32,555 nucleotides of DNA from Dicyema japonicum (GCA_011109175.1 RDEW01000094.1:1-32555), one strand, 5' to 3'. Counted from the stretch's first letter, positions 1,131 to 32,555 are shown. Notes: generated by a model not told the origin, from the sequence alone. Translations and numbers: made by a program.

Positions 1131-3409
1131 TTTTAATAAAACTTAAATTTGTTTTTTGTTTATTTATGAGATTTTTCTAAAAATTATCTCTTTGTTGTAG
1201 TTCAAAGTTATTGATTTTATTTTTTCAAATTGGCACCAAAATTTTAATTGAAATTATATTTAATTATCAATACGCATAAATAATTAATTAAAACAGCCAT
1301 CTATCCAGAGTGGACCTAGCCGACAATATCGACGTTGCGCTGNTTTTTGAGATTTACTTCTGAAATGAAAAAAATTTGATGCGAAAAGACAAAAGTTCAT
1401 TAAGATAGCAGTCATTGATTAAGTAACCATGAATTTCGCTGTTTTGTTCTTCGACAAAATTAAGATCACCATTATTCACAACCCACTCTTAAGGAATTAC
1501 AATGTTACATCTGGGGAACATAAATTCGTTAAAGTTGACTTTTATTTTTTTATTTGATTGATTTTATGCTATTTGCTAGTAAAAAAAGTCTCTGGCCCAC
1601 ATGCGGACGACAGAACATTGGTTTAAAACACAGACAAGTTCAAAAAAATATTGCAAAGATGTGAATACGTTGAATTCATGTAGAATATGATGTAAGTAGT
1701 TGCTGCAGAAGATTTACTAGAGAGCTGCATTAACGTGATCCATTGCATTCGAACCTAGGATAAGGATTCATCTCAATTTGTTCAATCATAAAATCCACAT
1801 TCTCTCCAATCTCCAGGAGCATCATATACAGCCAGGAGCTTTAAATTTTTTTCAGAATTATTTTTTTTGCTTTAAAAAATTAAATTTTTAAAATCTTTTT
1901 TTTACCAATAACTAATAAAATTCTATTAATAATATATATTCATTTTAAAAACCTCACAAACATTTCTCATATTGAATGATACTATTCCATTATGATTGGC
2001 TCTATTGTCATATCGAATGAGAAATGGTATAACAACGGAGAACTTAATTTGGCTATTTGTTCTTCTATTGATCCCAGACAACGCATTCAACCAATTAGGC
2101 ACAAGTAGAACCATAAGAATTCATATGCTTATGGGTAACGTGTGAGTACATTTAACTGACTGACAAATTTTCAATGTTCGGATGTTTGTAAGCCAGACCC
2201 CTTATAGAATAGAAGCATAAGACCACCTCAACAAAATTGATTTTTAACATCTGACGGGTGTTTTTTTCACGTTGCTTTAATAACAATAATTTTTGTAGTC
2301 CAAGTTGATGTCTTCTTTTTACAATGTCCAAACGACTTTTAGTTTAGACACTTCCACCGGTTAACACAGCTTGCGTTTAAATTAATGATGCAGCAATCGA
2401 AAGAACGGAAATTTTCGATCTTTTAAAATCAAGAATTTTTTGAATATTGATTACATAAAATGAAAAAATTAATGAAAATTTTTTAAAAAATTCAGAAAGA
2501 CTGAATAAAATCAGAAAACATGAGACTTGTAGACAAAAAGATACAGCGTTAAATCAATCGAAATTCGGCCGTCTCTTGAGTAAGATGGATCCAATGACGC
2601 CACCAGAAAGAAGATAAATATTAATCAAGTAGCCACATGGTAATTCAGCTTTATTGACTTTATTTTAAAATTGGCGACAAAATTCAAGTAATCAAAATGC
2701 CAATTTGCCAGGAATCACGGTAAAAATAATTTTTTATCACCCACCTAAGTTCATATCGCCCCCTGAAAGCAATTTCTCATAAACACCCACCTGAAATTTC
2801 AAATCGCCCTAAAAAGAACCGATATCACTCATTTTGGTAAAGCTTGAACAAATTGAAATGATGGTAGATATTTACCCTCTATTCATCGCGAAAATATATA
2901 TGAAGAGACTGCGCGGAAGTGTTTGCTGGCTCATTTGATGAATAAATAATGAGATGTAGCTAAATTAAACATATAAACAATGTACGTAAATTTGAATTTT
3001 TTGTAAAATTAATTATTTTGTAAAATTTTTTATAATTAATAATTTCCAGATGAGTAGTCTATATTTATTTTAATTATTAAATTTTCAATATAAAACCACT
3101 CACTAATAAATTAAATTTTACGTTCAATGAATTAATTTATCGTTATTTAAGATTTAAAAATGTAACAAATGTTATGTGCAATGTATATACGTGTGCTATG
3201 ATGTAAATTGTACCGCCCCAGTCTGATAATAATGCTGATTGTACATTCTGAGCACCTCATTTGTTAAATTATCAATTTCAACATAAAACCTCGAATCCAT
3301 CGCATTTTTAAAATAATTTTTTTCATTTTCTCATTATTTTTATTTTTTCAATTTTTTTTCAAAAAAAACTTCTACACGAGACATTATCATTTTTTGTGTT
3401 GTGGTCTTA

Positions 3410-3900
3410 ATGAAACGTAATTATACAAGATTAAAAAATTATGAAAAGCTCCAAATTATAAAATTTATCGGACAAAATCCACGGATTTCACTGCAAGAGT
3501 GTCTGAAATAGTTTTCGGAAAATTCAAACGTGTTATTTCAAAACGATCCTTAAATTCGTGTCAAGACTGCAAATAAATGATCAAATTCCAGAAGATGAGT
3601 TTCTTCTCTATAGTATACAGAGAATGAAGAGATCCTGGAAAATATTGATGAAAATGATGATGAAGAAAAAGAATATCAGAGCCTACGCTTCTATGAAGAT
3701 CACTAACGAAATACCAAACTACCGTCGATAGGAATTCCGACGATCGAGATGAAAATTGTAAGGTCGCAAATCGTGTGAAAAATATTCTATATAACAAGGA
3801 AGATTAATTCAACTTTAACTTTACCTTGCGGCAAAAAAACTAAAACAGCCAACGATCTTGTTGAATTAATTAATTTGATGAAAAGAAGAGACCTTGGATG
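3410..3900 (+). mobile_element. Second pogo/Tigger-like HTH remnant (different family), degraded
   Basis: ATG at 3410 gives MKRNYTRLKNYEKLQIIKFIGQNPRISLQ, continuing after a frameshift as EIVFGKFKRVISKRSL. This resembles the psq/CENP-B N-terminal HTH. The downstream part is too decayed to confirm. Confidence 0.4.
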
Positions 3901-4139
3901 GGAATAGTACAAAGGGTGCACATGGGAACCTTAATTGTTTTTTTGTGTTATCTGCAGTGCCAATAAAACAGGATCTTCCAATCAACAAAGACAATGGTAA
4001 ATCAAAAACGACACATGTCAATCATTAACGACACTTTGTCAATCAATTCAATACTGCTGCGGAATAAAACCAATTTTTTAGTATTTAGTCAAATTTCAAC
4101 CCTAATGACCACATCAAATAACCAGGAAAATGAAAGAAA

Positions 4140-4520
4140 CAATAGCCAGGAAGGCGTAAAATCTCAAATGAAGTCAGAGAACTCTTTATTAACAATGCTA
4201 AGAATAATTTTGGCAATACCGAGATCTCCCGAGTTATGGCTCTTCCTTGTACAAATGTTTGTACAATTGTTTCTTCATATCTGAAGGATGAAGTTTTCAA
4301 TGCTCTGAAAGACATAATGTGTCAACCGTGGAGGGGATCATAAAACAATCTTGACCGATTATCATAAAAATTTAATACGGAGTGGATTGATAAAGATGCA
4401 ACAATGACCTTGGGGGCGTTGAAAATAAAACTTTGAGGAGGAGACGAGATATTTGTATGTACAAGCACCATCACTGAAAACTCTCAACATTGTTTCTGGG
4501 AGAAGAAACTGTAAAAGCAC
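4140..4520 (+). mobile_element. IS630/Tc1-mariner transposase N-terminal (homeodomain-like HTH) remnant
   Basis: Translation across breaks gives MLRNNFGNTEISRVMALPCTNVCTIVSSYLKDEV and RGGDHKTILTDYHKNLIREWIDKDATMTLGALKIKL. Same element type as 20060-20990. Confidence 0.6.
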
Positions 4521-4599
4521 CAATCAGGCACGATTGGAATATGGGAAAAATTTCCAAGAAATTTTATCTGACGTTGGGGATAGTTAAATATAAAGTAGT

Positions 4600-5416
4600 A
4601 ACTAATGCTAATAATGCTATTTTGTACCAGCAATTAGCTGATATATTCTAAATTTGTTTTGAAAGACTATATCACAAAAAACAAATATTTTTACTGAAGA
4701 AAGATACTATTTTACATGATTCTAAAATTATCAACTGTCTTCTAAAGCTACGCGTAAACCAAAGTTTCCGAAACTTGAAGATAAGTTGGTAGAATGAATG
4801 GATGAGGTTGTGGATCTAAAATTATCTTATGGAAAAATCAATTTTTTTGGTTATTTTCTGAATAGTATTTTTTTCAAATGAGTTGCANAATTAGCTGATA
4901 TATTCTAAATTTGTTTTGAAAGACTATATCACAAAAAACAAATATTTTTACTGAAGAAAGACACTATTTTACATGATTCTAAAATTATCAACTGTCTTCT
5001 AAAGCTACGCGTAAACCAAAGTTTCCGAAACTTGAAGATAAGTTGGTAGAATGAATGGAGGAGGTTGTGGATCTAAAATTATCTTATGAAAAAATCAATT
5101 TTGTAGGTTATTTTCTATATGGTATTTTTTTCAAATGAGTTGCAACTCAGTGATTTCAAAAATCCTAATGGATTTTATGACTTCTTCATTAAGACTTTAA
5201 AGAAATTTCAAATGCACATATTGAAACAAATAAAATCGGTTAGGAATTAAATTTTAATAAAACTTAAATTTGTTTTTTGTTCATTTATGACATTTTTCTA
5301 AAAATTATCTCTTCGTTGTTTTTCAAAGTTATTGATTTTATTTTTTCAAATTGGCCACAAAATTTTAATTGAAATTATATTTGATTATCAAAACGCATAA
5401 ATAATTAATTAACACA
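4600..5416 (+). mobile_element. pogo/Tigger-like HTH remnant, copy of about 770-1295, with a 257-nt apparent duplication joined at a single N
   Basis: SSKATRKPKFPKLEDKLVE*MEEVV...NELQLSDFKNPNG, highly similar to 770-1295. Segment 4632-4887 is repeated from 4889, with N at 4888. Confidence 0.6.
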
Positions 5417-5469
5417 NNNNNNNNNNNNNNNNNNNNNNNNNNNNNNNNNNNNNNNNNNNNNNNNNNNNN

Positions 5470-5960
5470 ACTCCAGATATCAATTTCGTCAATCAAAACA
5501 AATTTTTTCAGATCTATAATAAATGCAAATAAAACCTAAAAAATAGCTTAATTCTGTCAAGCTGCATCTGCCATAAATTTTCTACACTTTTTCGACATCG
5601 GTAAATAGAAGGAAGATTATGTCCAATACTCTCAAACAAGTCTCGTAAGCCTTTAGTGTTTAACTATTGCAAGAGAATATCGGATTCGACAAAAGCCTTA
5701 GTTAGTGACTTTATCGACCCATGTGTCGGCAGATGAGACGAGTTATATAGTATTGACACCTGTAAAATAGTAAAAAAATAATAAACCTGCTAATTTAATA
5801 TGCTTTTTAGAGGATCTATGTGATTCACTAAAAAATTTGTTTTTTTTTTGCAGTACAAATGTCCCACATAAATTAAAAAAGAGATTTCCTTGTGAATTGA
5901 TAGAAAATCCATCAGGAGATTTTCAAACACAAGACTTATTCTTTTCAATTACACGCTTGA
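5470..5960 (-). mobile_element. CGGBP1-like/hAT transposase remnant (zinc-finger-like N-terminus + DUF region + first catalytic strand)
   Basis: Minus-strand translation across breaks: FSINSQGNLFFNLCGTFV..KFFSESHRSSKKH; TKAFVESDILLQ*LNTKGLRDLFESIGHNLPSIYRCRK; DLKKFVLIDEIDI. These resemble CGGBP1/hAT motifs 'AF.SADIPL.KL.N..LR.F' and 'IDE' by recall. Confidence 0.55.
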
Positions 5961-6080
5961 TTGACCTAAAAATCAAATTTTGACCTTTTTGACATTAAAC
6001 AAAATTTTTACGTTATAACTTTTGATTAATATAATATTTTTGATTAAAAATACGTTTTTTATAAGTTTTTGACAATTTTA

Positions 6081-6374
6081 AAGAACATATCAATTTTTGA
6101 CTTTAATTGACAAAATTGTCCTAGTAATCATATAATTTCCAGACACATTTGAATTTAGTTTCCCACTGCATGGTCACAAACTGGATGTCTCCTTCCACAT
6201 CAAAATCCTCTATAACAATATATACAAAAAGAACATATCAATTTTTGACTTTAATTGACAAAATTGCCCTAGTAATCATATAATTTCCAGACACAATTGA
6301 ATTTAGTTTCCGACTGCATGGTCACACACTGGATGTCTCCTTCCACATCAAAATCCTCTATAACAATATATACA
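6081..6374. repeat. 148-nt tandem duplication containing the empty target site of the CRE element
   Basis: Units 6081-6228 and 6229-6374 differ at about 4 positions. Each carries CATATCAATTTTTGACTTTAATTGAC, with AATTTTTGA at 6092-6100 and 6240-6248. Confidence 0.85.
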
Positions 6375-6600
6375 ACAGGACGGAGACAATTCATTGACAC
6401 GAATATCCTTCGAACTGTAGCTGGTCACTCTAATGGTCAACAAAGAGAGTTTCAAACGCTCATGTACAAGCAATTCATTAAGATGACACTGAATTATCTC
6501 TCCCTAACGTGGGCTCCACGCATATCACCCTCAACTGTCTCCAACTGGCCTGAATTACCAGGAATCGACGTGAAAGTAATGTAGCTTTGGGAGCATCCTG
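6290..6600 (+). mobile_element. LINE (APE-type) RT thumb fragment
   Basis: NILRTVAGHSNGQQREFQTLMYKQFIKMTLNYLSLTWAPRISPS resembles the LINE post-RT motif 'LR.LAG..WG......L.YK..IRS.LDY....W.P'. Paralog at about 18990-19224. Confidence 0.6.
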
Positions 6601-6879
6601 TCTTTTAACGGTAGCCAGTTTTCTATTTTAGCGAAACTGGTTAATACTTTAATTTATAGCATTTGGATGCCCTAATTATTATTGATCGATTAGAAATGAC
6701 TCGTAATTAACAATTCTCTTTAGGTTTGCTTCTCCCCACACTGGCTACTTAGTCAAATATTTCTCTAAGTTCCTCTTTCCTTCTCTTCTTTTTTGAGTGG
6801 TATTCTGACATCCACTTGTCTCAGATAATAGTGGCATAAAAAAATAATCTCGATCAATAGAGATTAATTTTTAAGATTA

Positions 6880-7020
6880 AAAACGAACTGAAGATCTATC
6901 CTGTCGGATCGGCTCAATGATCCTGAGGGTCACCAAAAATCCACGGGAGACTGGATGGCTTCGAGAGCGTATCTCAATATATATCGTCAGAGGAAAGAGA
7001 GCCGTGTTAGCTACCTAATT
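6880..7020 (+). mobile_element. CRE-type retrotransposon extreme C-terminus/3' end
   Basis: NPRETGWLRERISIYIVRGKRAVLA matches the CRE C-terminal motif 'D.RE..FL.QRISLAI.RGN'. Paralog at 19280-19415. Confidence 0.6.
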
Positions 7021-7169
7021 TTTAATTTCTAAAATCACTTAATAAATTTGAACAAAAGAACAAAAAAATTATGGTGACATTGTTATTATCAAGGCACTTT
7101 CACGAAAGCCATAATGTTTATAGTCCCGAATATGCAACACTCAAAACAATATTTAGCATTAATCTTTTC

Positions 7170-7410
7170 TATTTTCTTCTTTCGAATGCAGACCATCTTA
7201 ATTCGTCTAGGTCATCCCCCCTTTTGAGCTTTTTTCACCTGGTTTAAATCTTTGTTTAAGATAATCGGCTGTGTCGTCCGCGGAAAGGTTTGTCGCAACT
7301 GTCAAAGAAATCTTCCATAGCTCTGTTAGCAGGTGCGTACGGGTTCATTCTTAATACATGTCCGAATAGCTGTACTGGGTATCTATCACATCATTTCTGA
7401 TGTAATAACA
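7170..7410 (-). mobile_element. RTE-clade retrotransposon 3' fragment
   Basis: QLFGHVLRMNPYAPANRAMEDFFDSCDKPFRGR..LNKDL..DDLDELRWSAFERRK matches the RTE C-terminal motif 'FGHILRM...PA..AM....F..RGR'. Paralog at 19565-19800. Confidence 0.7.
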
Positions 7411-7685
7411 CATAAACCTGTTGTAAATACAACTGGTTGATATTCTTAAGCTTATAAAGCTGGCTAATTGAACACATTTCCTTATTTTTGAGCACAAAGT
7501 TACATCCAAAAATAAAAAAAATGATAGCATTAAGTGTAATTGAGCTATGCGGTAGAGCTCAGAGATCCATCATCAGTTCAATTATCAAGTCAATTGACCA
7601 CGTGGTTAACTGGTAGAAAATATAAGGTTGGTATTGACTAAATTACTCAATTTATTAAAATGAAATTGAAAACAAATCAACTTGC

Positions 7686-8908
7686 TTATAAATTAATGAC
7701 TGTTTTGATTCCATTAGAGGAAATCAAATTATCGAATGCCTCTTGGTACTCATCAATTCCGTAACGGTGTGTAATGAGATCAGAGACATTCACTTTCCCA
7801 GAACTGATTAGGTCGATTGCCTGCGGATAACTGAAATTATACGTTCGAACTCTACCAATTATAAGTGTTTATAAATCCTCGGACTTCCAAAAATTTCCAG
7901 ACTATATTTGAAGTCAAGACTGAAGTTTTGGGAGATCCAAGTCCTACAAGAGTCAACACCCCACCTGGGAAGTTGCCTTTTATGATCTTTTAAAATAAGT
8001 ACATTAATGAGGCTTTCTATGTTTGAACTGATCCCACAACAGTCGATAGATACATCAGCCATCATTCCCAGTTGACTTACTACTCTTTTTCCTATCTCAA
8101 TGACAGATTCTCCTTTTTGTACGACAACTCCACAATCAGCTCCTTTTTTTCATAGCAAAGCTGACTTTATCTCTAGAAACGTCTAAATTTAAGTTGATAC
8201 AATAACCCATGACGCAAATTCGTGAAGCTCCACTAACTTTAGCAATCATCATTGTTAGTGAGCCAATGACCCCTGCACGTGTTTTCAGATAAATAAATAC
8301 CGACTCCACCAATAAGAACAGTTTGTCCAATCGATATTCCAGCACGTTTGCAGATACCCACGGCAATGGAAAGTGGCTGAACAAGTGCACCTTCCTCAAA
8401 AGACATTGAATCTGGAATTTTGAAGCAACAAGAAGCTTTGCGTGTGATACTCTGCGTGTGATACTCTGAAAGGGCTCCATCTTGATTGACATCTCCCAAA
8501 TAATTGAGATTTTCGCAAATGTTTGATTTTCCTTCTTTGCAAAATTTACAGTCATTGCATCTTATAAGAGGCTCTACTGCAACTCTGTCTCCTACTTGAT
8601 TATCCACTTTAAGACCTGGTCTTAAATTTGTAACATTTGACCCGACCTCTTCACAATTCCAGCTGGTTCGTGTCCAAGTCGAAGAGGTCTCAGATTTATC
8701 AAATTATTAAGGCCACCATTTTTCCAGCTTGCAACGTCACTCCCACAAAGTCCAACAGATTTTATTCTGATTTTGACTTCTAAGATTGAAATTAACTAAT
8801 TAACCATCAACGTCTATTTTTGGTGGAGTTTGTATTTCCTAGTTATGAATTATGCTAAATTACCAATCGTAAATCATTGGGACCATATAAAACGACAGAT
8901 TTCGACAT
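7686..8908 (-). pseudogene. SORD: Sorbitol dehydrogenase (zinc-dependent MDR family), 8 exons/7 tiny introns, apparently frameshifted
   Basis: Spliced translation: MSKSVVLYGPNDLRL|EIQTPPKIDVD|EVKIRIKSVGLCGSDV..LGHEPAGIV..P|GDRVAVEP..CNDCKFCKEGKSNIC..GGV|GVIG..M|DVSRDK..LIN|..PGGVLTLVGLG..YN|CYPQAIDLISSGKVNVSDLITHRY..NL*. GT-AG introns: 8839-8863 (25), 8780-8804 (25), 8592-8615 (24), 8273-8300 (28), 8183-8206 (24), 7977-8002 (26), 7831-7855 (25). Frameshifts near 8652 (-1), 8144-8150 (+1 in an A7 run) and about 7970 (-1). A 14-nt tandem duplication lies at 8440-8467. Confidence 0.92.
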
Positions 8909-9127
8909 TGTCAAATGTTAGCGACAAAACTCTCTTTATAGTTGTGGTTTATAGTGGTCATATTTAAAAATCTGATAAGCTTACTAATTCATCGATGTGG
9001 TTAATCCCAAAGCGTGTTATTGACTATCAGAATTCCAACATTATTAATTCTATCGGAAAGATAATTTCATATTCTTATTATGAGATTAAATTTATTTTGA
9101 TGTGATGATGATGTGCAATAGAGGTAT

Positions 9128-9817
9128 NNNNNNNNNNNNNNNNNNNNNNNNNNNNNNNNNNNNNNNNNNNNNNNNNNNNNNNNNNNNNNNNNNNNNNNNN
9201 NNNNNNNNNNNNNNNNNNNNNNNNNNNNNNNNNNNNNNNNNNNNNNNNNNNNNNNNNNNNNNNNNNNNNNNNNNNNNNNNNNNNNNNNNNNNNNNNNNNN
9301 NNNNNNNNNNNNNNNNNNNNNNNNNNNNNNNNNNNNNNNNNNNNNNNNNNNNNNNNNNNNNNNNNNNNNNNNNNNNNNNNNNNNNNNNNNNNNNNNNNNN
9401 NNNNNNNNNNNNNNNNNNNNNNNNNNNNNNNNNNNNNNNNNNNNNNNNNNNNNNNNNNNNNNNNNNNNNNNNNNNNNNNNNNNNNNNNNNNNNNNNNNNN
9501 NNNNNNNNNNNNNNNNNNNNNNNNNNNNNNNNNNNNNNNNNNNNNNNNNNNNNNNNNNNNNNNNNNNNNNNNNNNNNNNNNNNNNNNNNNNNNNNNNNNN
9601 NNNNNNNNNNNNNNNNNNNNNNNNNNNNNNNNNNNNNNNNNNNNNNNNNNNNNNNNNNNNNNNNNNNNNNNNNNNNNNNNNNNNNNNNNNNNNNNNNNNN
9701 NNNNNNNNNNNNNNNNNNNNNNNNNNNNNNNNNNNNNNNNNNNNNNNNNNNNNNNNNNNNNNNNNNNNNNNNNNNNNNNNNNNNNNNNNNNNNNNNNNNN
9801 NNNNNNNNNNNNNNNNN
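9128..9817. other. Assembly gap (690 N)
   Basis: Run of N. Its flanks match 21664 and 23018 in block B. Other gaps: 5417-5469 and 24733-25059. Confidence 1.
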
Positions 9818-10237
9818 GGCTCGTTAACTTCCGACGGATAGAATTTAATGGTAAACCTATAAAAGTTGATATCATGGATTGTTTCATCATAAGTTCCATA
9901 GACAACATCATAGTCTAACAATAAACTAAATAATACATGAGAATATTCTGAAAGTGAAATGAATATAAAAATTAAAACCAGCATTAACAAATAATACAGA
10001 TATTCAATATATAAGCAGCATAAATAAAATTCAGACACAAATCGTTAACACAATTATTAATAAATTTTTGTTGCTTTTGAGTTCTTAAATTAGATGGGAC
10101 AAGTTATTCAATTTGATAATTGGTCGGGCTGCAATTCCACTAAATGTCTAATTAATTTCATATTATGTTTACCGGTAGAATAAATGAATGGATTTGTTTT
10201 TCAATCATATTAGTCGATTGTTTAAACAAATCATTGC

Positions 10238-10405
10238 AAAACCACTGGTGTGGATAGCATCTCTATCTCCAACCTTGTTATGACAGCAACTAACACATGC
10301 TCTGCCTCAGAGAAGGCTGAGACCCTAAAGGTGAAGAAATACGTATGTCTCGGTGGACGATTCATTTTTGACCAGTAGCCGTGAAAACGTCAAAATTTAA
10401 TGAAG
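10238..10405 (+). mobile_element. CRE-type RLE domain fragment
   Basis: KPLVW(D)..DSISISNLVMTATNTCSASEKAETLKVKKYVCLGGRFIF..PVAVKT resembles CRE 'L.WD..C.DT...S.....A......A..AE..K..KY..L...F.F.PVAVET'. Paralog at 23440-23605. Confidence 0.6.
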
Positions 10406-10469
10406 CATGTCATTGATTGAATAGACAGAATCAGATCGCTCATTGCGAAGAAGAAAAATGATAAAAAGT

Positions 10470-10830
10470 TAAAAAAGATATGATAAATTCAAGGTCATTA
10501 TAACGCAAAATCGATTGTTACAATTCATATAAAAGGTTGCTCAATTTCGATATCATTGACCTAAGCGATCTTTAAAAGATATCTTCTAAGGCCCTATGAC
10601 TTCATTCGTTTCGGAGACAACGGTTGCTCATGAAATCTTGTAAGTGGCAGTTGTATTTGGTTATTTAAAGTTTTCGAATACTAGTGATGCCTTCAAAGCT
10701 TCTTGTAGGAATCTTATAATTTCTGAGTGCAAAAAGGTATCCATAGATGCACCATTGCAAATAAGGTTTTTCCTAAGAGAGAATAGAAAAACTGTGATCC
10801 TGTCTGGGTGTTTTATATCAACTCGATATA
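10470..10830 (-). mobile_element. CRE-type RLE domain fragment (degenerate)
   Basis: DIKHPDRITVFLFSLRKNLICNGASMDTF..VSETNEVIGP corresponds to CRE 'DGKRPDGITVFPF..GK.L.WDATC.DTF..AVET.GV.GP'. Paralogs at 23670-24035 and 31090-31440, where it reads KRPDWITVYLF. Confidence 0.6.
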
Positions 10831-10849
10831 TGAAAAAAAGTTGAAAATG

Positions 10850-11378
10850 CAGATCTTGACTACTTAAGAGAGAATACAAGAAAAAGAAACTTGGAAGATG
10901 ATAATTAACGAAATTATTGGGAGTATTTAAAATAAAAAAACAACGAGAAAAGTAATAGTAGTTAATGAATAGGTACATATGAATTGGTCCTATGCTAATT
11001 CGGCGTTTAATAACAAATGTGATGACTCCGATGATTGTAGGTGTTACAACAGTGAGTATAATTCCTATAATAATGTACATTTTTGAATTATTAGAATTTT
11101 TATTTTTTTCAGGNCAGATCTTGACTACTTAAGAGAGAAAACAAGAAAAAGCAACTTGGAAGATGATATTTAACGAAATTATTCGGAGTATTTAAAATAA
11201 AAAAACAACGAGAAAAGTAATAGTAGTTAATGAATAGGTACATATGACATTGGTCCTATGCTAATTCGGCGTTTAATAACAAATGTGATGACTCCGATGA
11301 TTGTAGGTGTTACAACAGTGAGTATAATTCCTATAATAATGTACATTTTTGAATTATTAGAATTTGTATTTTTTCCAG
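10850..11378. repeat. 264-nt apparent tandem duplication joined at a single N (includes the LAMP-like last exon); probable scaffolding artefact
   Basis: Segment 10850-11113 is repeated at 11115-11378, with N at 11114. The left copy has a 1-nt deletion in the cytoplasmic tail codons. Confidence 0.75.
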
Positions 11379-12416
11379 GAATTCCTTTTTCAAAACACAC
11401 CGACTCTAAAATTCAGGAAAAATCAAACCGTTCCCAGTATAACGGAATTTAAAATCATCCCGAAGAATTTGTGCCTTAAATAATGAAAACTCAACATATA
11501 TGTCATCAGCAAATTTAGTGAGAGACAATTCGAAGTTACAGGAATTTCCAACATCAATCAATTTGGTATTATTAGGACTCCAAGACCCGTTATAGATTTT
11601 ATCGATGATTAACTGAATTTTGGACATATAATATTTTTTTTGATACAAAATAAATGTAAAAAGTATTTCAAAACGACTCCCCATAAGAGATAATTCAACA
11701 CTATTGTTATCAAAATTAATCTTCGTTTTCAAAATCTCGGAAAAAGCTAATAAAGCATTAATCTAATATTAAAATATACAATTTACTATTTCAACTTTGT
11801 GATTATAAAAAAATATGATTTTAAAATGACCACTTAATATTCCTTTCAGTCGATTTTCGGCAATAAAATACCAATATCGAACTTTTGAATCTTTAGATTG
11901 ATTACAATCATTTGCTAAATTAAATTATATCAAACCTTTTCCAATAAAAGATGATCTTGATTGTTTATTGTAATATTCTATCACCAAAGAATATATCGCG
12001 AGAGTATTACCATTTTCAAAATTTACGGACATATATCCGCATCTGTAATAATCTCCTTTTTTAATTTTTGGAAGATTTGTTGTATTTGAATAGGTTTTAT
12101 TATCTTTGAGTGGTAAATATTAATTACTAGAATTTAAATCAATTTTTATTGAGATTTTGTAGAATTCCCCTGAGGATTCAAAATAAAATTGGAAGAACAA
12201 ATTATTTATGTGCTTTGTAATTGGTGTTTTACTAAAATAAACCTGAAAAGAAATAATTTTAAATGAATAATTATCTGTTGTCTAACATTATTATTTATAA
12301 AAAACATTTGTAAGTGTACTTTTCAATAAACTTTTTCCATATACTGACATTCGATGTTTTAATTTTGAATTCGTAATTGTGGACAAAAACATTAATAATA
12401 AAATTAACAATAACAT
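11227..12416 (-). CDS. Intact LAMP-like (lysosome-associated membrane glycoprotein) type I membrane protein, 357 aa, 6 exons
   Basis: Exons 12416-12306, 12281-12128, 12103-11936, 11914-11787, 11762-11429, 11405-11227 total 1074 nt with no internal stop after removing GT-AG introns of 24, 24, 21, 24 and 23 nt. The product has a signal peptide (MLLLILLLMFLSTITNS), 10 N-X-S/T sequons, two beta-rich repeats each with a G-x-x-(Y)-x-C-like motif and a closing Cys (GDYYRC..ANDC; GNSC..ESVC), a TM segment (YIIIGIILTVVTPTIIGVITFVI) and the tail KRRISIGPMSYVPIH* with a Yxx-hydrophobic motif. The gene model is seen directly; the LAMP identity is inferred. Confidence 0.8.
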
Positions 12417-13339: not shown

Positions 13340-13830
13340 ATCAACCTATAACCTATCCCTACCTCGGTGGTAGTCAAGGACAATAAACCGGACATTGTGG
13401 TACACGATAAGGAGTCTGGCCAAGCCCTTATCATAGAAGTTGGCATCACGTCTCAAGACCGTTTGCAGACTGTGCAGGTGGAGAAAAAAAGGAAGTATGA
13501 CTTTCTTGCAAACGAGATGGGGCAGATGCTTGGTTGCAGGGTCCTCGTTTATTCCTATAGTAATGACGTGGGAAGAAAATTCAACAAAGTACCACAAGGG
13601 TTATCTGAATAGTTGAGGGTAGATAGGAAGCTCCAGGCATATCTACAGTCCACTGTGTTAAAGCGGACCCTAGATAGCCTGACACTGGAGTATACGAGGC
13701 AGAGTCCTGAGATGCCATATGGGCAGAGGGTTCAATTAGACATGGCGCTCTCGGAGTTGTTTCAATAACCAGAATCGAACCTGCCTGAGGAGGCTGGCGA
13801 AGAAGGTTGTTGATTAAATATATTAACTTT
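13340..13830 (+). mobile_element. R4/NeSL-type non-LTR retrotransposon RLE (PD-D/ExK) C-terminus and 3' UTR
   Basis: KDNKPDIVVHDKESGQALIIEVGITSQDRLQTVQVEKKRKYDFLANEMG, then after a frameshift IPIVMTWE..TKYHKGYL..LQAYLQSTVLKRTLDSL. This is a canonical RLE 'PD...EV.I...EK..KY' signature. Confidence 0.85.
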
Positions 13831-15427
13831 TTTATTGTTTGTTAAATAAAGTGGGATTTCGATTTATATTCATTTTAAAAACCTCACATAAATTTCTCAT
13901 ATTGAATGATACTATTACATTATGATTGGCTCTATTGTCATATCGAATGAGAAATGGTATCACAACGAGCAACTTAATTTGGCTATTTGTTTTTCTGTTG
14001 ATCCCAGAAAACGGATGTTGAGATGTAACAAACAACAACTACTATTAAAATGAATAGTGTTTGGCAATAAAGATAGAATATTAATGACAGATTTTTAAGC
14101 TTTTGACTAAAAAATCTTTTGCTAAATTGTAGTTTTATTATTAATTTTGAAACAACAAAAGTTATTAATAAACACAAACAGTTAACCACTACTGTCTGCT
14201 CTCAGCATTAAGAACATATTTTCCCAACGATCTGTAAGGTTAATGAGCCAGCTCCTTTCGCTCATCTTTTTTCCATCTTGCAATAAGTTTATTATTAAAA
14301 CTCTAACATTAATTAAATTTCAAATAAAGTAATTGTAGACTCAAATAAATTAACATAAAATCACACTATCAAATTTCTTAATATATTTTTATTAGAGATT
14401 TTTTAAGACTTGAGGCCTATTGGCTTCTATTTTTAGTATTCGTTGTCATCACGAGAGTCTACGATTCACCATTTATATTAACGGGGACTATTTGACAAAT
14501 TATTTAAACATCTTTTAATAAAGATTATTATTTTTTAATAAAAAAATTTTATTTAAAAAAAAACTACGACCATTCGACTCATTATTATGCTAGTCAGTGC
14601 CGCTACGTCCATTATGTCGACGGGGACTATTTGACTGATAATTTAAATTTAATGGGCGCCACCCACCTATACGGATGGATTACATGACGCCATTCTAATA
14701 GGAGGTAAAACGGATGAACAACAAAAGAATCAGAAAAATTCAACCAATTAGGCACAAGTAGAACCATAAGTATTCATATGCTTATGAATAACGTGTGAGT
14801 GGATTTAACTGACTAATAAATTTTCAATATTCGGATGTTTGTAAGGCAGACCCCTTATAGAATAGAGGCATATCACCACCTAAAAAAATTTATTTCAAAC
14901 ATCGGACGGGTGAAACATAGCTATTATAGTTTTTCACGTTGCTTTAATAATAATAATTTCTGTAGCCCAAGTTGATGTCCTTTTTCTACAAAGTCCAAAC
15001 GACTTTTAGTTTAGACACTTCCACCGGTTCTCACGGCCTGCGTTAAAATTAATTATACAGCAATCGAAAAACGGATATTTTCGATCTTTTAAAATCAAGA
15101 ATTTTATGAATATTGATTACATAGAGAATGAAAAGATTAATGAAAATTTTTTAAAAGATTCAGAAAAACTGAATAAAATTAGAAAACACGAGACTTGTGG
15201 ACAAAAAAGATACAGCGTTAAATCAATCGGAATTTGGGCGTCTATTGAGTAAGATGGATCCAATGACGCCACCAGAAAGAAGATATATCTTAATCAAGTT
15301 GCCACATGGTAATTCAGCTTTATTGAATTTATTTTTTAAATTAGCGACAAAATTCAAGTAATCAAAATGGCCAATTTGCCAGGATTCACTGTAAAAATAA
15401 TTGTTTATCAACCACCTAAGTTCACTA

Positions 15428-15830
15428 ACTTTTTCGACAAGGATAAATAGAAGGAATATTATGTCCAATACTCTCAAACAAGTCTCGTAAGCCTTTAGTG
15501 TTTAACTAATGCAAGAGTATATCGGATTCGACAAAAGCCTTAGTTAGTGACTTTATCGATCCATGTGTCGGCAGATGAGTCGGTTTTATAGTATTGAAAC
15601 CTGTAAAATATATAATAAAAATAATAAACCTGCAATTTTGATATGCTTTTTAGAGGATTTATGTGATTCAATAAAAAATTTGTTTTTTTTGCAGTTACAA
15701 ATGTCCCACATAAATTAAAAAAATGATTTTTTTGTGAATTGATAGAAAATCCATCAGGATATTTTCAAACAGAAGACTTATTCTTTTCAATTACACGCTT
15801 GATTGAACGCGGAATCACAGTGAATGATGA
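15428..15830 (-). mobile_element. CGGBP1-like/hAT transposase remnant (duplicate of 5583-5960)
   Basis: Near-identical to 5583-5960. Confidence 0.5.
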
Positions 15831-16020
15831 TAATTGATTCACGCTAGTATTTTATTTAAAATCTCAAAAAAGTAAAAAAAAATAAAAATTAATAAAATTT
15901 TTGACTTTTTTGACCTAAAAATTACATTTTGACTTTATAACTTTTGATTAATATAATATTTTTGATTACAAATACGTATGTATAAGTTTTAGACAATTTT
16001 AAAGAACATATAATTTTTGA

Positions 16021-18762
16021 TTTTATTTTTGAGTTTTCATATAAACGGAAGGCCTCTCCCGCTTTCATTGCCGACCTCAAAAGTTTCGACTGTGGTGAAT
16101 ATTATTTGTGGTGGTGTGGTGTAATTGAGAAAAAGTGATCAGAAGCGATATGCACAAGATCGACAAAAGAGAAGAGCTTTGTGAATTTTGCAATAAAATT
16201 AACAATAGAAAGCGGCTGATATGCTGTGTCGTTTGTTCGTCGGTTTTTCACATGTCATGTGTTGGAATCACCAAAAAAGCCCTTACCATCATTACCAACT
16301 GGTGTTGCCAGGCATACCTCCTTCCTGGTACTAAAGCACCATCAACTCCACCTAATTCACCTGAACGAATACCAATAGATTACCAGAAAATTCTTGAATC
16401 AATTGCAAACCTGGCATCTACACGAAGGATCATGATCAAAATTCCAAAAGCTGCCCGTGTTCCTGCCGCCGACTGTTTACACGATTGTATTGAAAAGGCA
16501 ATTTCTTCGACTTATCTAGTGGATTGGACACGATTATTCTACTTTGCACCATACACGCTATGTATGCCCTGTCAGAAGAGGAAAGATCAGGAATCGCTCA
16601 CGTCTATTGTAAAGGAAAATTTTTGCTTGTTTTCTTCTGGAAATTTGTTCAGTGACTCCCGAGAATATACCTTCAACCACTCAAACCACGAGAACCATTC
16701 CTCAGAAACACAAAGATTGGGAAGAGCGATACATCGCAAACTATCTGAAGGTGGAGTCCAGGCCGCCGTGAGGAGTCTAGAAGAGTATAACCATCTAATT
16801 GAGCCAACTGAACACTCCTACGATGCACTGGTTGAACGACATTTTGGTCCGCCAGTGGACGAACAGATCCCTAGTTGCTCTGGTAAATTACCTAGTCTGA
16901 TTATTTCTGAGGGGGACGTGAAAGATGTGATCCTCTCATTCGCCCCAAGCAGCTTGGGGGACTTGACGGACTCTGTCCAGGACACCTAAAAGACTTAATT
17001 GATCAGAATACGGGGAACTCTGGTGTTCGGCTATTATCGGCTATAACGAGGATAATCAACAGAATGCTTTCCGGAAGATTACCAGAAGCAATCCGTCATA
17101 TTATGTTTTCCGCCAAGTTAATTGCCATTGATAAATGTGGAGGAGGAATTCGTCCTATTGCTGTTGGGTTTGTTTTTCGTCGATTGGCTTCTAAACTTGC
17201 TAGCAGAGCAATCCTTCCGATACTTGTCAAACAACTGCGACCAACTTAAGTAGGGGTCGGTTCTCCTGGTAGATGGGAGGCGGCAGTTCATGCCGTTCGG
17301 ATGTTTACTGGAAACAGAACGAACATGCCTTGTGTAATACCATACGGTTCGATATAATTTTGGAAAATTGTCTTACCCATTACCCGTCTATATATAATTA
17401 TGTTCATTGTTGGTATGGAGAACCGTCCAGTCTTGTACATGGGAAATACTTCATTTCCTCGTCGTGTGAAGTTCAGCAAGGAGACCCACTAGGACCGGCA
17501 TTGTTCTGCCTCGGCGTTGACCGTGTCATGAGATGCCTTACTACTCCGCTGAACGTGTGGTATTTGATGATTGCACCCTGGGAGGTCATCCTAACAATGT
17601 ATATGACTGTCTACAGAGATCACTAACCCAATTGGATACGCTTGGTTTAAAGCTAAACGCATCCAAATGCGAAATTATTAATTATGGATTCTCCCGATGA
17701 GAATGGAATCGAATCCTATTAATGTTTCAGGGGATTATTTCTAAAATATCGGTAATCGAGCCGGAACATTTGGAAATACTCGGATACTCTCTGGTTGCAA
17801 CTGGAATTAATGACACTCTGTTGGCTAAAGAACAGCAACTAAGAAAAACTTTTTTACGCCTTGGGATGCTGGATGCACATACTACTTTTTTTCTCATGAA
17901 AAACGTTTTATCCACGCAGAAATTAAATTACGTCCTTCGAAGAGCTCCATGTTACCTGAAAATGCAACAACTCGGGGAGATTGACTCCCTGAGATTGAGG
18001 CTTTTGAAAATATCTAACTAACACCGACGAGCCTGTCTTTTAACTGCAAGATGCGAGTGGAGCGGAGCTTGGATCAATGCCCTACACATTAGAAACGTGG
18101 GAACTCACCTAGACGATGAAACGGTCCGCTCCGGATTCTCCATCAGACTTGGATTGAAAGTTTGTCAACTCCGTGAGTGCCGATGCGGCCGGAAGGTCGA
18201 CTGGACATCATGTTCTTTCTTGTCGAAAAAGCGCAGGTCGATTCGGTAGACACAAGGCTATAAATGAAGTGGTGAAGCGCGCCCTCAAGTTGCCGGGATA
18301 CCCATCCATTCTAGAGCCAACGGGCTTGAGTAGGGATGATGGGAAGCGACCCGATGGAATTACTGTCTTCCCCTTCTCTCGGGGCAAATGCTTAATCTGG
18401 GATGCTACCTGTAATGACAGCTTTTCCCAGTCGAAACTTTTGAGGTCGGCAATGAAAGCGGGAGAGGCCGCCCGTTTATATGAAAACTCAAAAATAAAGA
18501 AATACAGCAGTCTCCTAAACCGTTTCCATGTGCGGCCAGTGGTCGTCGAGACGAGGGTTTTAGAAAAATTAGAGGGGAGTCTTTGGCCCCAAGACGGTCT
18601 CTTTCCTTAGAGCACTTTGGTGTCTATTGAACAAAGCCTCGAGGGAGTGTCGGGAAACCAAGTGGCTTTTCCAAAGGATATCCCTGGCAGTAGTCAGAAG
18701 TAACAGCCACTCGATCACATCCGCTGGACTCAGTAATGAACTACTCATGTTTTTTAATAATA
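16021..18762 (+). mobile_element. Near full-length CRE-clade non-LTR retrotransposon (PHD finger - RT - CCHC - RLE), decayed, with 9-bp TSD
   Basis: PHD CEFC..CVVC....HMSC..WCCQAY from 16180; KIPKAARVPAA; EGGVQAAVR; GGGIRPIAVGFVFRRLASK; RT QQGDPLGP (17474) and frameshifted YL[D]D (17561); CRCG..HVLSC; KRPDG..WDATC..VVVET. 3' tail TAATAATAA. TSD AATTTTTGA at 16012-16020 and 18763-18771. Empty site at 6092-6100. Confidence 0.9.
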
Positions 18763-19013
18763 AATTTTTGACTTTAATTGACAAAATTGCCCTAGTAATC
18801 ATATAATTTCCAGACACATTTGAATTTAGTTTCCGACTGCATGGTCACCTGGCAGTAGTCAGAAGTAACAGCCACTCGATCACATCCGCTGGACTCAGTA
18901 ATGAACTACTCATGTTTTTTAATAATAAATTTTTGACTTTAATTGACAAAATTGCCCTAGTAATCATATAATTTCCAGACACATTAGAATTTAGTTTCCG
19001 ACTGCATGGTCAC
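18684..19013. repeat. 165-nt tandem duplication spanning the CRE 3' junction
   Basis: Units 18684-18848 and 18849-19013, one mismatch seen. Confidence 0.9.
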
Positions 19014-19735
19014 AAACTGGATGACTCTTTCCACATCAAAATCTTATATAACAATATATACAACAGAACGGAGACAATTCATTAACACGAATAACCTCGA
19101 AATGTAGCTGGTCACTTTAATGGTCAACAAAGAGAGTTCCAAACGTTCATGTACAAGCAATTCATTAAGATGACACTGAATTATCTCTCCCAAACGTGGG
19201 CTTTACGCATATCACCCTCAACTGAGTGGCATAAAAAATTAATCTTGATTAATAGAGATAAATTTTTAAGATCAAAAAACGAACTAAAGATCTAGTCCGT
19301 CGGATCGCCTCAATGATCCAAAGGGTCACCAAAAATCCACGGGAGACAGGAAGGCTTCGAGAGCGTATCTCAATATCTATCGTCAGAGGAAAGAGAGCCG
19401 TATTAGCTACCTAATTTTTAATTTCTAAAATCACTTAATAAATTTGAAAAAAAGAACAAAAAAATTATGGTGACATTGTTATTATCAAGGCACTTTCACG
19501 AAAGCCATAATGTTTATAGTCCCGAATATGCAACACTCAAAACAATATTTAGCGTTAATCTTTTCTATTTTCCTTTTTCGAATGCAGACGATCTTAATTC
19601 GTCTAGGTCATCCCCCGTTTTGAGCTTTTTTCACCTGGTTTAAATCTTTGTTTAAGATAATCGGCTGTGTCGTCAGCGGAAAGGTTTGTCGCAACTGTCA
19701 AAGAAATCTTCCATAGCTCTGTTAGTAGGTGCGTA

Positions 19736-19947
19736 CGGGTTCATTCTTAATACATGTCCGAATAGCTCTACTGGGGATCTATCACATCATTTCTGATGTA
19801 ATAACACATAAACTTGTTGTAAATATCACTGGTTGATATTCCGGGTTCATTCTTAATACATGTCCGAATAGCTCTACTGGGGATCTATCACATCATTTCT
19901 GATGTAATAACACATAAACTTGTTGTAAATATCACTGGTTAATATTC
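19736..19947. repeat. 106-nt tandem duplication
   Basis: CGGGTTCATTCTTAATACATG... starts at 19736 and 19842. Single copy in block A at 7344. Confidence 0.9.
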
Positions 19948-22620: not shown

Positions 22621-22645
22621 AAAAACAATAAACAGAGTTAAAAAA

Positions 22646-24165: not shown

Positions 24166-24732
24166 TTAATAAATAGGTACATATGACATTGGTCCTATGC
24201 TAATTCGGCGTTTAATAACAAATGTGATGACTCCCATGATTGTAGGTGTTACAACAGTGAGTATAATTCCTATACGAATATACATTTTTGAATTATTAGA
24301 ATTTGTATTTTTTCCAGGAATTCCTTTTCAAAACACACCGACTCTAAAATTCAGGAAAAAATCAAACCGTTCACACTACAACGGAATTTAAAATCATCCC
24401 GAAGAATTTGGCATTAAATGATGAAAACTCACCATATATGTCATCAGCAAATTTAGTGAGAGACAATTCGAAGTTACAGGAATTTCCAACATCAATCAAT
24501 TTGGTATTATTAGGACTTTAAGACCCGTTATAGATTTTATCAATGATTAACTGAATTTTGGACATATAATATTTTTTTTAATACAAAATAAATGTAAAAA
24601 TTATTTCAAAACGACTCCCCATAAGAGATAATTCAACACTATTGTTATCAAAATTAATCTTCGTTATCAAAATCTCGGAAAAAGCTAATAAAATATTAAT
24701 CAAATATTAAAATATACAATTTACTATTTCAA
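24166..24732 (-). pseudogene. LAMP-like gene copy B (3' exons; 5' part lost in gap), frameshifted
   Basis: Near-identical to 11227-11792, tail ..MSYVPIY*. 1-nt deletions near 24325 and 24411 relative to the intact copy. Confidence 0.8.
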
Positions 24733-29750: not shown

Positions 29751-29899
29751 TCTTTTCTTTACACTGGGCTAATTAATGAATTAATGAATATAAGATTATT
29801 ACAATTATATGATTTATATAAGTTTTATTAGTTTCGAATTTATTATATGTTAAAAGTTAATTCATCAATATAACAAGTGACTTAAATTATACACATTGA

Positions 29900-31050
29900 A
29901 GTGTTCATTATTCATTTTTATGTTAATGTTAATGATTTGTCCTCAATCACGAATATCAAATTCAGACAACATATGTCATTTGAAATTGTTTTTTGAAGAG
30001 TAGTCGTAAAAAATGTATTTTATAAATAAGTATAATGGTAGACAAAGAATTATTTATTTAACATTCATTATAGAATAAATTTTTATGATGGAATGAACGA
30101 TAAAATCCAAAGAAAAAACTTAATTTTTAATTTTTTGGTGGATTTTCAGAGGAATTCTACAACCTCTCAATAAACATAGAATTAAATTCTAGTAATTATT
30201 ATTTAACACTCAAAGGTGATGAAACCTATAGGAATACAATAAATCTTCCAAATATTAAATATGGAGAATATTACTGATGCGGGTATATCTCCGTAAATTT
30301 TGAGAATCATTATTCTCTCACAATTTATTCTATGACGGAAGAATTGTTCGATAAAGATTTACGTACATATTTAATTGGAAAGGGTTTAAATCTTGTTTAA
30401 TTCAGCAAATGACTGTGATCCATCTGACGATCCAAATGTTCGATATTGATATTTTATTGCCGAAAATAGACTAAAAGCTATATTAAGTGGGAATTTTAAA
30501 ATCATATATTTTAATGATCACATTCATAAAATCGTAAATTGTATATTTCTATAGTTGATTAATAAATTTTTATTTTCAGACCAAAATATGAATACTACGA
30601 TTTATTTTGGAAACAATAGTGTGGCGTTGTCTCTTATAGGAATACATTTTGAATTATTTTTTACATTTATATTGTATCAGAACAAATATTATATCTCCAA
30701 CATTCAGTTAATCATCGATAGCGTGTATACTCTGTCTTGGAGACCTAATAAATCCAAATTGGTTGATGTTAGGAAATCATGTATCTCCGAATTGCTTTTT
30801 GCTAAATTTACTGATGACATATATGCTGAATTTTCATTATTTAAGGCACACTTCTTAAGGATGATTTGAATTTCAGTTAAATTGGGAACGGTTTAATTTT
30901 TCTTGAATTTTAAAGTCGGGGAGTTTTGAAAAAGTTACTTCTGGATAAAATAAAAATTATAATCATTCAAAAATTTTTAAAATTATAGGAATTATACTCA
31001 CCGTTCTAACATTTTCAATCATAGGAGTCATCGCATTTTTTAAGATAAAC
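29900..31050 (+). pseudogene. Diverged LAMP-like paralog D (convergent with copy C)
   Basis: Same five intron positions: 30015-30041 (27), 30192-30215 (24), 30384-30405 (22), 30534-30554 (21), 30891-30913 (23, acceptor mutated to AA). GEYY*CGYISVNFEN, ANDCDPSDDPNVRY*YFIAENRLK and GIILTV are retained. In-frame TGA stops, a degenerate start and a lost tail. Confidence 0.8.
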
Positions 31051-32555
31051 GTCATCGCAAAGAAGAAAAATGAAAAGGAGTTAAAAATATATGATAAATT
31101 CAAGGTCATTATTCCGCAAAATAGATTGTTACAATTCATATAAAATGTTGCTCAATTTTGATATCATTGACCTAAGCGATTTTAAAAAGAATTCTTCTAA
31201 AGCCATATGACTTCATTTGTCTCGGCGACAACGGTCGCTCATTAAAATCTGGTAAGAGGCAATTGTATTTGAATATTTAAAGTCTTCGAATACCAGCGAT
31301 GCCTTCAATTCTTCAATGAAGAATTTTATAATTTCTGACTGCAAGAAAGTATCCGTGGATGCCCCATTGCAAATAATGTTTTCCTAAGAGAGAATAGATA
31401 AACTGTGATCCAATCTGGGCGTTTTATATCACCACGATATATGAAAAAAAAGTTGAAAATGCAGATCTTGACAACTTAAGAGAAAAAACAAGAAAGAGCA
31501 ACTTGGAAGAAGATAATTAAGAAAATTATTGAGAGTTTTTAAAATAAAAAAACAATGAGAAACGTAATAGTAGTTAAAGAATAGGTAAATATGGCATTGG
31601 TCTTATGCTATTTCGGTGTTTAATAACAAATGTGATGACACCGATGATTGTAGGTGTTACAACAGTGAGTATAATTCCTATAATAATATACATTTTTGAA
31701 TGATTAGAATTTTTATTTTTTCGAGGAATTCCTTTTTCAAAACAAACTGACTCTAAAATTCAGGAAAAATCAAACCGTTCCCAGTATAACGGAATTTAAA
31801 ATCATCCCGAAGAATTTTAGTCTTAAATGATGAAAACTCACCATATATGTTATCAACAAATTTTATGAGATACAATTCGAAGTAACAGGAATTTCCAACA
31901 TCAATAAATTTAGTATTATTAAGACTCCAAGACACGTTATAGATTTTATCGATGATTAACTGAATTTTGGACATATAACATTTTTTTTGATACAAAATAA
32001 ATGTAAAAAGTATTTCAAAACGACTCCCCTTAAGAGATAATTCAACACTATTGTTATCAAAATTAATCTTCGTTTCCAAAATATTGGAAAAAAATAATAA
32101 AACATTAATCTAATATTAAAATATACAATTTACTATTTCAACTTTGTGATTATTAAAAAATATGATTATAAAATGCCCACTTAATATTCCTTTCAGTCGA
32201 TTTTCGGCAATAAAATACCAATATCGAACTTTTGGATCGTTAGATGGATAACAGTCATTTGCTAAATTAAATTATATCAAACCTTTTCCAATAAAATTTG
32301 ATCTTTATCGTTTAGTGTAATATTCTATCACCAAAGAATATATCGTGAGAGTATTACCATTTTCAAAATTTACGGACATATATCCGCTTCTGTAATAATC
32401 TCCTTGTTTAATTTTTGGAATATTTGTTGTATTTGTATAGGTTTTATTATCTTTGAGTGTTAAATATTAATTACTAGAATTTAAATCAATTTTTATTGAG
32501 ATTTTGTAGAATTCCCCTGAGGATTCAAAATAAAATTGGTAGAACAAGTTATTTA
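31050..32555. repeat. Third copy of the LAMP-like module plus downstream CRE remnant (paralogous to about 10440-12215)
   Basis: Direct sequence match to 10440-11100/11115-12215 and to 23640-24732. Confidence 0.9.
31574..32555 (-). pseudogene. LAMP-like gene copy C (5' end beyond window), premature stop
   Basis: Same introns as the intact copy. In-frame TAA at 32305-32307 (TCA in copy A). YYRC has become YYRS. Tail ..PMPYLPIL*. Confidence 0.8.

Follow-up and report, generated by a model that had tools for sequence, protein, structure and literature searches.

An intact six-exon gene with micro-introns in Dicyema japonicum, from a large family of probable LAMP-fold membrane glycoproteins

Main finding

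A stretch of 32,555 nucleotides (nt) of the Dicyema japonicum genome (GCA_011109175.1 RDEW01000094.1:1-32555), hereafter referred to as the window, carries on its minus strand, at 11227..12416, a real and intact gene of six exons that are separated by five introns of only 21-24 nt. The gene most probably represents an intact member of a family that is large, lineage-specific, and made up of type I membrane glycoproteins with the fold of the LAMP family, which line endo-lysosomal and apical membranes. Animals usually have a handful of LAMP genes. Dicyemids lack a gut, and they feed through endocytic peripheral cells on food from octopus urine.

Gene structure and micro-introns

Extremely short introns are a known property of the D. 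japonicum genome (PMC6736024; PMC13644364). The window itself has a G+C content of 26-45% and contains several N gaps, and its contig extends past the window end. The parts of the gene are as follows.

11227..12416, minus strand: complete coding sequence (ATG to TAA) of 357 codons in six exons with five introns, frame open after intron removal
12306..12416, minus strand: exon 1, 111 nt, phase 0, encoding the hydrophobic, signal-peptide-like N-terminus MLLLILLLMFLSTITNS and the start of domain 1
12282..12305, minus strand: intron 1, 24 nt, GT..AG (22-27 nt in paralogs)
12128..12281, minus strand: exon 2, 154 nt, N-terminal half of the domain 1 core
12104..12127, minus strand: intron 2, 24 nt, GT..AG, with TAA in frame
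11936..12103, minus strand: exon 3, 168 nt, C-terminal half of the domain 1 core, with conserved NKT and NTT sequons and Cys110
11915..11935, minus strand: intron 3, 21 nt, GT..AG, phase 1, at a position homologous to that of intron 5
11787..11914, minus strand: exon 4, 128 nt, with Cys148 closing domain 1, then the first strands of domain 2
11763..11786, minus strand: intron 4, 24 nt, GT..AG, phase 0, with TAA and TAG in frame
11429..11762, minus strand: exon 5, 334 nt with 111 whole codons, core of the membrane-proximal domain (LAMP fold as predicted) with Cys262, source of both the structural model and the PF01299 signal
11406..11428, minus strand: intron 5, 23 nt, GT..AG, phase 1, removal of which shifts the reading frame
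11227..11405, minus strand: exon 6, 179 nt, with Cys302, a short stalk with a sequon, the transmembrane (TM) helix, the cytosolic tail and TAA

Each of the five introns was found once, and the six exons add up to 1074 nt, i.e., 357 codons plus TAA, with a single, terminal stop when the exons are read codon by codon. The five GT-AG introns and the uninterrupted frame of 357 residues proposed in the initial annotation are thereby recovered in full. An in-frame TAA or TAG is present in each of introns 1-4, and the last exon is brought back into frame by intron 5. Exon 1 has a 12-nt insertion compared to most paralogs.

All five introns occupy the same positions in 30 full-length paralogs, where GT and AG are almost always kept and lengths vary by non-multiples of three (22-27 nt for intron 1, 21-35 nt for intron 3, and 22-24 nt for intron 5). 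Solely with the introns removed are 14 of these 30 copies open from ATG to stop. Such conservation of introns through length changes that are not multiples of three, combined with the open frames obtained after removal, indicates that the gene model is more than chance, and the evolution of the paralogs thus supports the predicted splicing of all five introns. Among paralogs, the micro-introns are more conserved than the exons or the flanks (p-distance 0.083 vs 0.148 and 0.13-0.20), a pattern that would arise if splicing depended on almost all bases of so short an intron. This points to splicing constraint over the greater part of each 21-24-nt intron, and the family offers a natural test set for micro-intron splicing.

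A ciliate genetic code was also considered, as suggested by the tiny introns, the AT-richness, and one frame in which the in-frame stops are all TAA or TAG. It was rejected, because the frame shift of the last exon is supplied only by the 23-nt intron and the gene ends with TAA.

Size and expansion of the family

A search of the genome DNA with the gene gave 46 matches of 77-96% identity, and 30 full-length copies were aligned. With an exon-5 profile, 88 matches were obtained at about 73 loci on 31 contigs, some members being only about 30% identical to the window copy; the family is therefore far larger than the four-member local one that had been described at first. Loci are clustered, e.g., 15 on contig C112, 8 on C1, and a 2.3-kb tandem triplet on C223, and others are dispersed. 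The copy in the window is sister to those at 400 kb and 440 kb on C112, with which it has more than 2 kb of flank in common, and the unit conserved among distant copies is ~1.4 kb, namely the gene and ~100 nt on each side. The tandem or clustered arrangement and the shared flanks of >2 kb agree with the earlier proposal of expansion by segmental duplication.

Among the divergent members, subfamilies L043-L052 (e.g., C375:10400-12800, C112:49900-52300, and C33:3100-5500) have an exon 5 that is ~30% identical and show VGN[YF][FY]xC around the conserved Cys.

Predicted LAMP fold of exon 5

Sequence searches and folding were carried out exon by exon. The sole Pfam match of exon 5 in the window is PF01299 (Lamp2-like_luminal), with E 0.036 and 14.3 bits, which is below the gathering score of 27.2 bits; exons 1-4 and 6 have no Pfam match at E <= 10. 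PF01299 is also the only Pfam match that recurs in the family, namely in 11 of 14 close paralogs and, including divergent members, in 16 of 29, with a best score of 21.8 bits (E 1.8e-4). When all 67.5 Mb of the genome were scanned with PF01299 in six frames, six places matched, all within the LAMP-like family and all sub-threshold (best 19.3 bits).

Open frames that run through intron 5 and join the C-terminal Cys and the TM helix (members L057 and L040) gave no LAMP match in the Pfam scan, as the N-terminal strands that carry the signal are absent from them. In the former (L057:874-1311:-, at 257.6 kb on C112), intron 5 contains no stop and keeps the frame, such that exon 5, intron and exon 6 form one open frame of 146 residues.

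A first AlphaFold2 run of exon 5 with 14 close paralogs was poor, with a mean predicted local distance difference test score (pLDDT) of 57.5, and LAMPs nonetheless ranked first. The addition of 15 divergent members, giving an alignment of 29 rows, improved the model to pLDDT 78.6 with a predicted TM-score (pTM) of 0.70. When this model was compared with 350,542 PDB chains by Foldseek, the top three rows were LAMP-3 (4akm; E 4.7e-3 and 9.8e-3; query-based TM-score, TMq, 0.57-0.62) and LAMP-1 (5gv0; E 0.037, TMq 0.62), and the next, unrelated row had E 0.39. VIA-align against 48,161 representative chains returned LAMP-3 (Z 9.0), Ac45 twice (Z 8.2), LAMP-2 (Z 8.1), and LAMP-1 (Z 7.8 and 7.7), scores to be read with the caution that models lacking true relatives also commonly reach a best Z of 7-8. 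These top six all have the LAMP fold, with 98-106 of the 111 residues aligned, and the next fold follows at Z 5.4. With LAMPs ranked first by both comparisons and PF01299 recurring below its threshold, the LAMP beta-prism expected in the initial annotation appears in prediction, and LAMP identity is supported at the level of the predicted fold.

Since Ac45/ATP6AP1 shares this fold, a V-ATPase accessory subunit of that kind, rather than a LAMP proper, has to be considered. The bovine and mouse V-ATPase subunits (6xbw_s and 8xli_c) indeed score level with the LAMPs, at Z 8.2. However, no part of the genome matches the luminal domain of Ac45 (PF05827, VAS1_LD) at E <= 10, whereas PF01299 matches the family, although this is weak evidence, as the PF05827 search gave no match in the control genomes either. 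Two tandem LAMP-type domains, a tail with a Tyr motif, and ~73 loci are furthermore unlike a single-copy pump subunit, which makes this explanation extremely unlikely.

Protein architecture

By definition, LAMP family proteins have a LAMP domain of 150-200 residues directly beside the TM helix (Wilke et al., PMC3409847). The domain contains two fully conserved disulfides, of which the first links the two sheets and the second ties the C-terminus to the front sheet (PMC3409847). The TM helix has one Pro and two Gly, and is followed by a short sorting tail (PMC3409847). The corresponding features of the Dicyema gene are given below.

12041-12039, minus strand: Cys110 codon
11906-11904, minus strand: Cys148 codon
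11540-11538, minus strand: Cys262 codon
11397-11395, minus strand: Cys302 codon
11275..11343, minus strand: TM helix, residues ~320-342, YIIIGIILTVVTPTIIGVITFVI, with two Gly and one Pro
11233..11244, minus strand: Y-x-x-hydrophobic motif YVPI, residues 353-356, followed by His as the C-terminal residue

By hydropathy, the product has a type I layout, with a hydrophobic, signal-like N-terminus, a single TM helix on the C-terminal side, and a cytosolic tail of 15 residues (KRRISIGPMSYVPIH). Hydrophobic windows occur only at the N-terminus (residue 1) and at window starts 317-326, i.e., a segment of ~320-342. The TM residues in question, as read from the Dicyema protein itself, are G324, P332 and G336; the paralogs retain both Gly, and most of them have Leu instead of the Pro. 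Two Gly and one Pro in the TM helix, with a short tail, have been described for human LAMPs (PMC3409847). The LAMP-fold domain adjoins the TM helix, with the last Cys 17 residues ahead of it. In the tail, the Tyr lies ~10 residues from the membrane and is present in 14 of 14 intact copies, most of which have Y-x-P-[IV]; in the window copy it has no Gly before it. The 357 residues contain 10 N-x-S/T sequons, compared to 5-10 in each paralog when counted within exons. In the alignment, about 8 sequon positions are shared by 8 or more of the 14 intact copies. The codon-by-codon reading and the hydropathy thus return the signal-peptide-like N-terminus, the 10 sequons, the one TM helix, and the short tail that had been noted at the outset.

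The whole protein has four Cys, namely C110 (GDYYRC), C148 (ANDC), C262 (GNSC) and C302 (ESVC), all at the motifs by which they had been paired originally. Two fall in each domain, with 37 residues between C110 and C148 and 39 between C262 and C302, and all four are invariant in the 14 intact copies. A further Cys pair, 8 residues apart, is found in member L040 on contig C344.

By hhalign, the exon 3 profile matches the C-terminal 44 columns of the exon 5 profile with E 9.2e-5. In each of the two, the aligned block stops exactly where a phase-1 intron lies, and x-x-C comes next. The match of exon 2 with exon 5 is not significant (E 0.24), yet it has the same +4 offset and is collinear with the exon 3 match. 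Two tandem repeated domains, as first described, are therefore supported by profile comparison. Domain 2 follows directly after Cys148 without a Pro-rich hinge, and the whole protein contains 7 Pro.

In DC-LAMP, the first disulfide is formed by C274 and C311 (PMC3409847). Both lie within residues 258-369, to which the 111 residues of exon 5 align with one Cys only, so that the sheet-linking (first) disulfide must be absent. The retained pair ends just before the TM helix, like the second LAMP disulfide. The best reading of this pattern, in line with the initial annotation, is that the second disulfide has been kept and the first lost in each domain, with the Cys presumably paired as C110-C148 and C262-C302. 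If so, the LAMP prism can dispense with its sheet-linking disulfide, which is conserved in the rest of the LAMP family.

Selection against stop codons and a dN/dS of about 1

The median pairwise dN/dS (w) among the 14 intact copies is 0.97, and divergence is alike at the codon positions (0.166, 0.135, and 0.142). These ratios come from a simple counting method in an AT-biased genome, in which G/C bases mutate about twice as fast as A/T; as this inflates w, the true value is probably somewhat below 1. Over all 30 copies, for which intact ones were not preselected, 7 nonsense codons are found in the ancestral frame, whereas random placement of substitutions equal in number and kind would give ~157, i.e., a ~20-fold depletion. 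The terminal branches alone (median 0.036) would predict dozens of stops. A dN/dS of about 1 therefore does not reflect decay in this family. Residues in strands are more conserved than those in loops (identity 0.79 vs 0.61), with w 0.82 for strand codons vs 1.26 for non-strand codons.

A reading of the family as a repeat or as dead pseudogenes was examined and rejected, given the 7 vs ~157 nonsense codons. The copies that are broken in the assembly are mostly so by 1-nt indels and not by nonsense; exonic indel events number 45 for lengths that are not multiples of three vs 22 for those that are. Some of the 1-nt frame breaks may be assembly errors instead of pseudogenisation.

Another explanation is a host-facing, variable surface coat. 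In this view, the ciliated peripheral cells would carry a set of plasma-membrane glycoproteins that factors of the cephalopod host have driven to diversify, the LAMP-derived fold would have a non-lysosomal job, and the Tyr motif would serve only rapid surface turnover. A dN/dS of about 1 with equally divergent codon positions, the higher w in non-strand codons, the strong avoidance of stops, and ~73 clustered loci, many of them recently broken as in parasite surface-antigen families, all fit such a coat. However, the excess over w = 1 is small, is obtained by simple counting, and is inflated by the faster mutation of G/C, and the conserved Y-x-P-hydrophobic tail favours endocytic or lysosomal sorting. 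A surface coat is thus regarded as the main alternative, but as clearly less likely. In its strongest form, a LAMP-fold gene amplified to about 70-100 copies would constitute a diversifying, host-exposed repertoire on the endocytic surface of the parasite; this is a tentative and rather doubtful proposal, which, if true, would provide an animal analogue of protozoan variant surface families, built on a lysosomal scaffold in a most reduced animal genome.

Relationship to LAMPs

Several observations weigh against assigning this family to the LAMPs and to an endo-lysosomal role. At the sequence level, no exon piece reaches the PF01299 gathering score; a PDB sequence search with two exon-5 profiles did not find LAMP and listed only chance rows of picornavirus VP1 and SLX1 at E about 1; an exon-5 profile had zero matches at E <= 0.001 among 1.84 billion representative proteins; and the ESM Atlas gave no usable match. 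From these null searches, together with the sub-threshold Pfam matches, it follows that the family is isolated at the sequence level. Structurally, the modelled piece comprises exon 5 only, i.e., 111 residues or about 70% of one domain, and the fold of the N-terminal domain depends on a modest hhalign score. Architecturally, one Cys pair is found per domain where LAMP domains have two disulfides, the Pro-rich hinge of LAMP-1 and LAMP-2 is lacking, and the Tyr motif is neither at the very C-terminus nor preceded by Gly. Evolutionarily, a dN/dS of about 1 is unlike housekeeping LAMPs, and about half of the copies are frame-broken in the assembly.

Part of this evidence would also be accounted for if the family were no relative of the LAMPs, but a lineage-specific, all-beta membrane family whose likeness to the LAMP prism results from convergence or model bias. 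Its weak PF01299 matches would then come from beta-strand composition in an AT-rich, Ile/Phe/Tyr/Asn-rich proteome. In favor of this are the Pfam matches that all remain sub-threshold, the failure of PDB sequence profiles to pick up LAMP, the lack of relatives among the 1.84 billion proteins, the loss of one of the two defining disulfides, and the common occurrence of best VIA-align Z-scores of 7-8 in models without true relatives. Nevertheless, among 48,161 chains the first six places are taken by every LAMP-fold representative and by nothing else, ~2.3 Z ahead of the next fold, Foldseek agrees independently, and the Pfam and fold signals converge on one family. The LAMP architecture appears to be matched as well, i.e., a domain adjoining the TM helix, a C-terminal Cys before it, Gly and Pro within it, a short Tyr-containing tail, and a tandem duplication. 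Taken together, a non-LAMP origin is judged very improbable, and homology with LAMPs would explain the likeness better than convergence.

Proposed role and significance

As a LAMP-fold glycoprotein, the gene product would enter the endoplasmic reticulum by its N-terminal signal sequence and could be N-glycosylated at up to about 10 sites. Its luminal part is predicted to be a tandem pair of LAMP-type beta-prisms, with one disulfide holding each domain together. This disulfide would be the counterpart of the second LAMP disulfide and would tie the C-terminus of the domain to the front sheet. The Gly/Pro-containing TM helix would act as the anchor, and the short cytosolic tail behind it would present a Y-x-x-hydrophobic motif like those that adaptor complexes recognise for endocytosis and lysosomal delivery. 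The protein may accordingly form a glycan-bearing lining of endo-lysosomal membranes and, through cycling, of the apical surface of the endocytic peripheral cells. Feeding by endocytosis has been described for D. japonicum (PMC6736024). As dicyemids are gutless and feed in this manner, an amplified endo-lysosomal lining protein would bear on their way of life.

In a genome annotated with ~5,000 genes, ~70 or more LAMP-fold loci would rank among the largest families. LAMP is not mentioned in the published D. japonicum genome paper or its supplementary text (PMC6736024), and a literature search found no paper linking dicyemids to LAMP. The family may have been missed through repeat masking or because of its micro-introns.

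Other copies and features of the window

The three additional copies that had been reported in the window all exist; all are damaged by stops, frameshifts, or lost splice sites. Together with a duplicated piece of the 3' exon, they are located as follows.

24166..24732, minus strand: paralog fragment, exons 5-6 only, with two in-frame stops, frameshifts, and loss of the intron 4 AG, abutting the N gap 24733-25059
31574..32555, minus strand: paralog from part of exon 2 through exon 6, with a stop in exon 3 and Cys110 changed to Ser, running past the end of the window into N
29852..31042, plus strand: diverged paralog, 77% identity, a pseudogene in which TGA/TAA stops interrupt the frame, the 3' splice sites are destroyed in introns 4 and 5, and 1 nt is deleted
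10902..11113, minus strand: duplicate of the 3' exon region, with 97.7% identity across 213 aligned nt, to the left of a single N at 11114

The last of these belongs to a wider repeat of 265 nt at the 3' exon (10850-11113 vs 11115-11379, 97.4% identical), which is probably an unmerged contig overlap around the N at 11114 and not biology. A similar tandem repeat of ~260 nt (4632-4887 vs 4889-5144, 97% identical) lies beside a single N at 4888 and likewise looks like unmerged contig ends. Most of the window consists of a patchy segmental repeat of ~12-13 kb with 88-97% identity (1-12400 vs 13800-24732, with a third, partial copy at 31052-32555), each unit of which ends in a LAMP-like gene copy.

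Outside the gene copies, ~13354-13870 is a dispersed repeat of ~510 nt with more than 40 places in the genome at 91-94% identity, and looks like a short non-autonomous mobile element. On the plus strand, an open frame of 284 residues with a PHD finger (16135-16989; E 6e-7) and a frame with a very weak reverse-transcriptase match (17273-17626; E 0.0095) may be retroelement debris in a G+C-richer block at 16-19 kb. Tandem duplications of 94-99% identity are found at 18683-19012 (165-nt units), 19736-19947 (106-nt units), and 22637-22830 (97-nt units).

Comparison with known systems

The Dicyema protein resembles LAMP-1 and LAMP-2 (PF01299; PDB 5gv0, 5gv3, and 8ath) in its type I topology, two tandem luminal domains, and the beta-prism predicted for the membrane-proximal core (Z 7.7-8.1), as well as in its many sequons, a predicted C-terminal disulfide before the TM helix, Gly and Pro in that helix, and a short Y-x-x-hydrophobic tail. 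It differs from them in having one disulfide per domain instead of two, in being smaller (357 residues), and in lacking the Pro-rich, O-glycosylated hinge of ~30 residues. Its Tyr motif is followed by one more residue, lacks a Gly in front, and has its Tyr ~10 residues from the membrane. Moreover, its sequence is below the Pfam threshold, and its family has ~73 loci vs one or two and a dN/dS of about 1.

The membrane-proximal domain of DC-LAMP/LAMP-3 (4akm) is the best structural match, both by Foldseek (E 4.7e-3, probability 1.00, TMq up to 0.62) and by VIA-align (Z 9.0, 106 residues aligned at 3.6 A). Sequence identity with it is however only 14-16%, and the Dicyema exon has no Cys at the first disulfide, C274-C311. 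Ac45/ATP6AP1 (6xbw chain s and 8xli chain c; PF05827) has a LAMP-like luminal domain beside a single TM helix as well (Z 8.2), but differs in its N-terminal part, is single-copy, and has no such Tyr-motif tail, and the Dicyema sequences carry no PF05827 signal. Lastly, the expanded, fast-evolving surface glycoprotein families of parasites share with the Dicyema family the dozens of clustered copies, many of them pseudogenes, missense changes about as frequent as silent ones, and conserved Cys and anchor. Unlike those families, the Dicyema family is predicted to be LAMP-fold and occurs in an animal.

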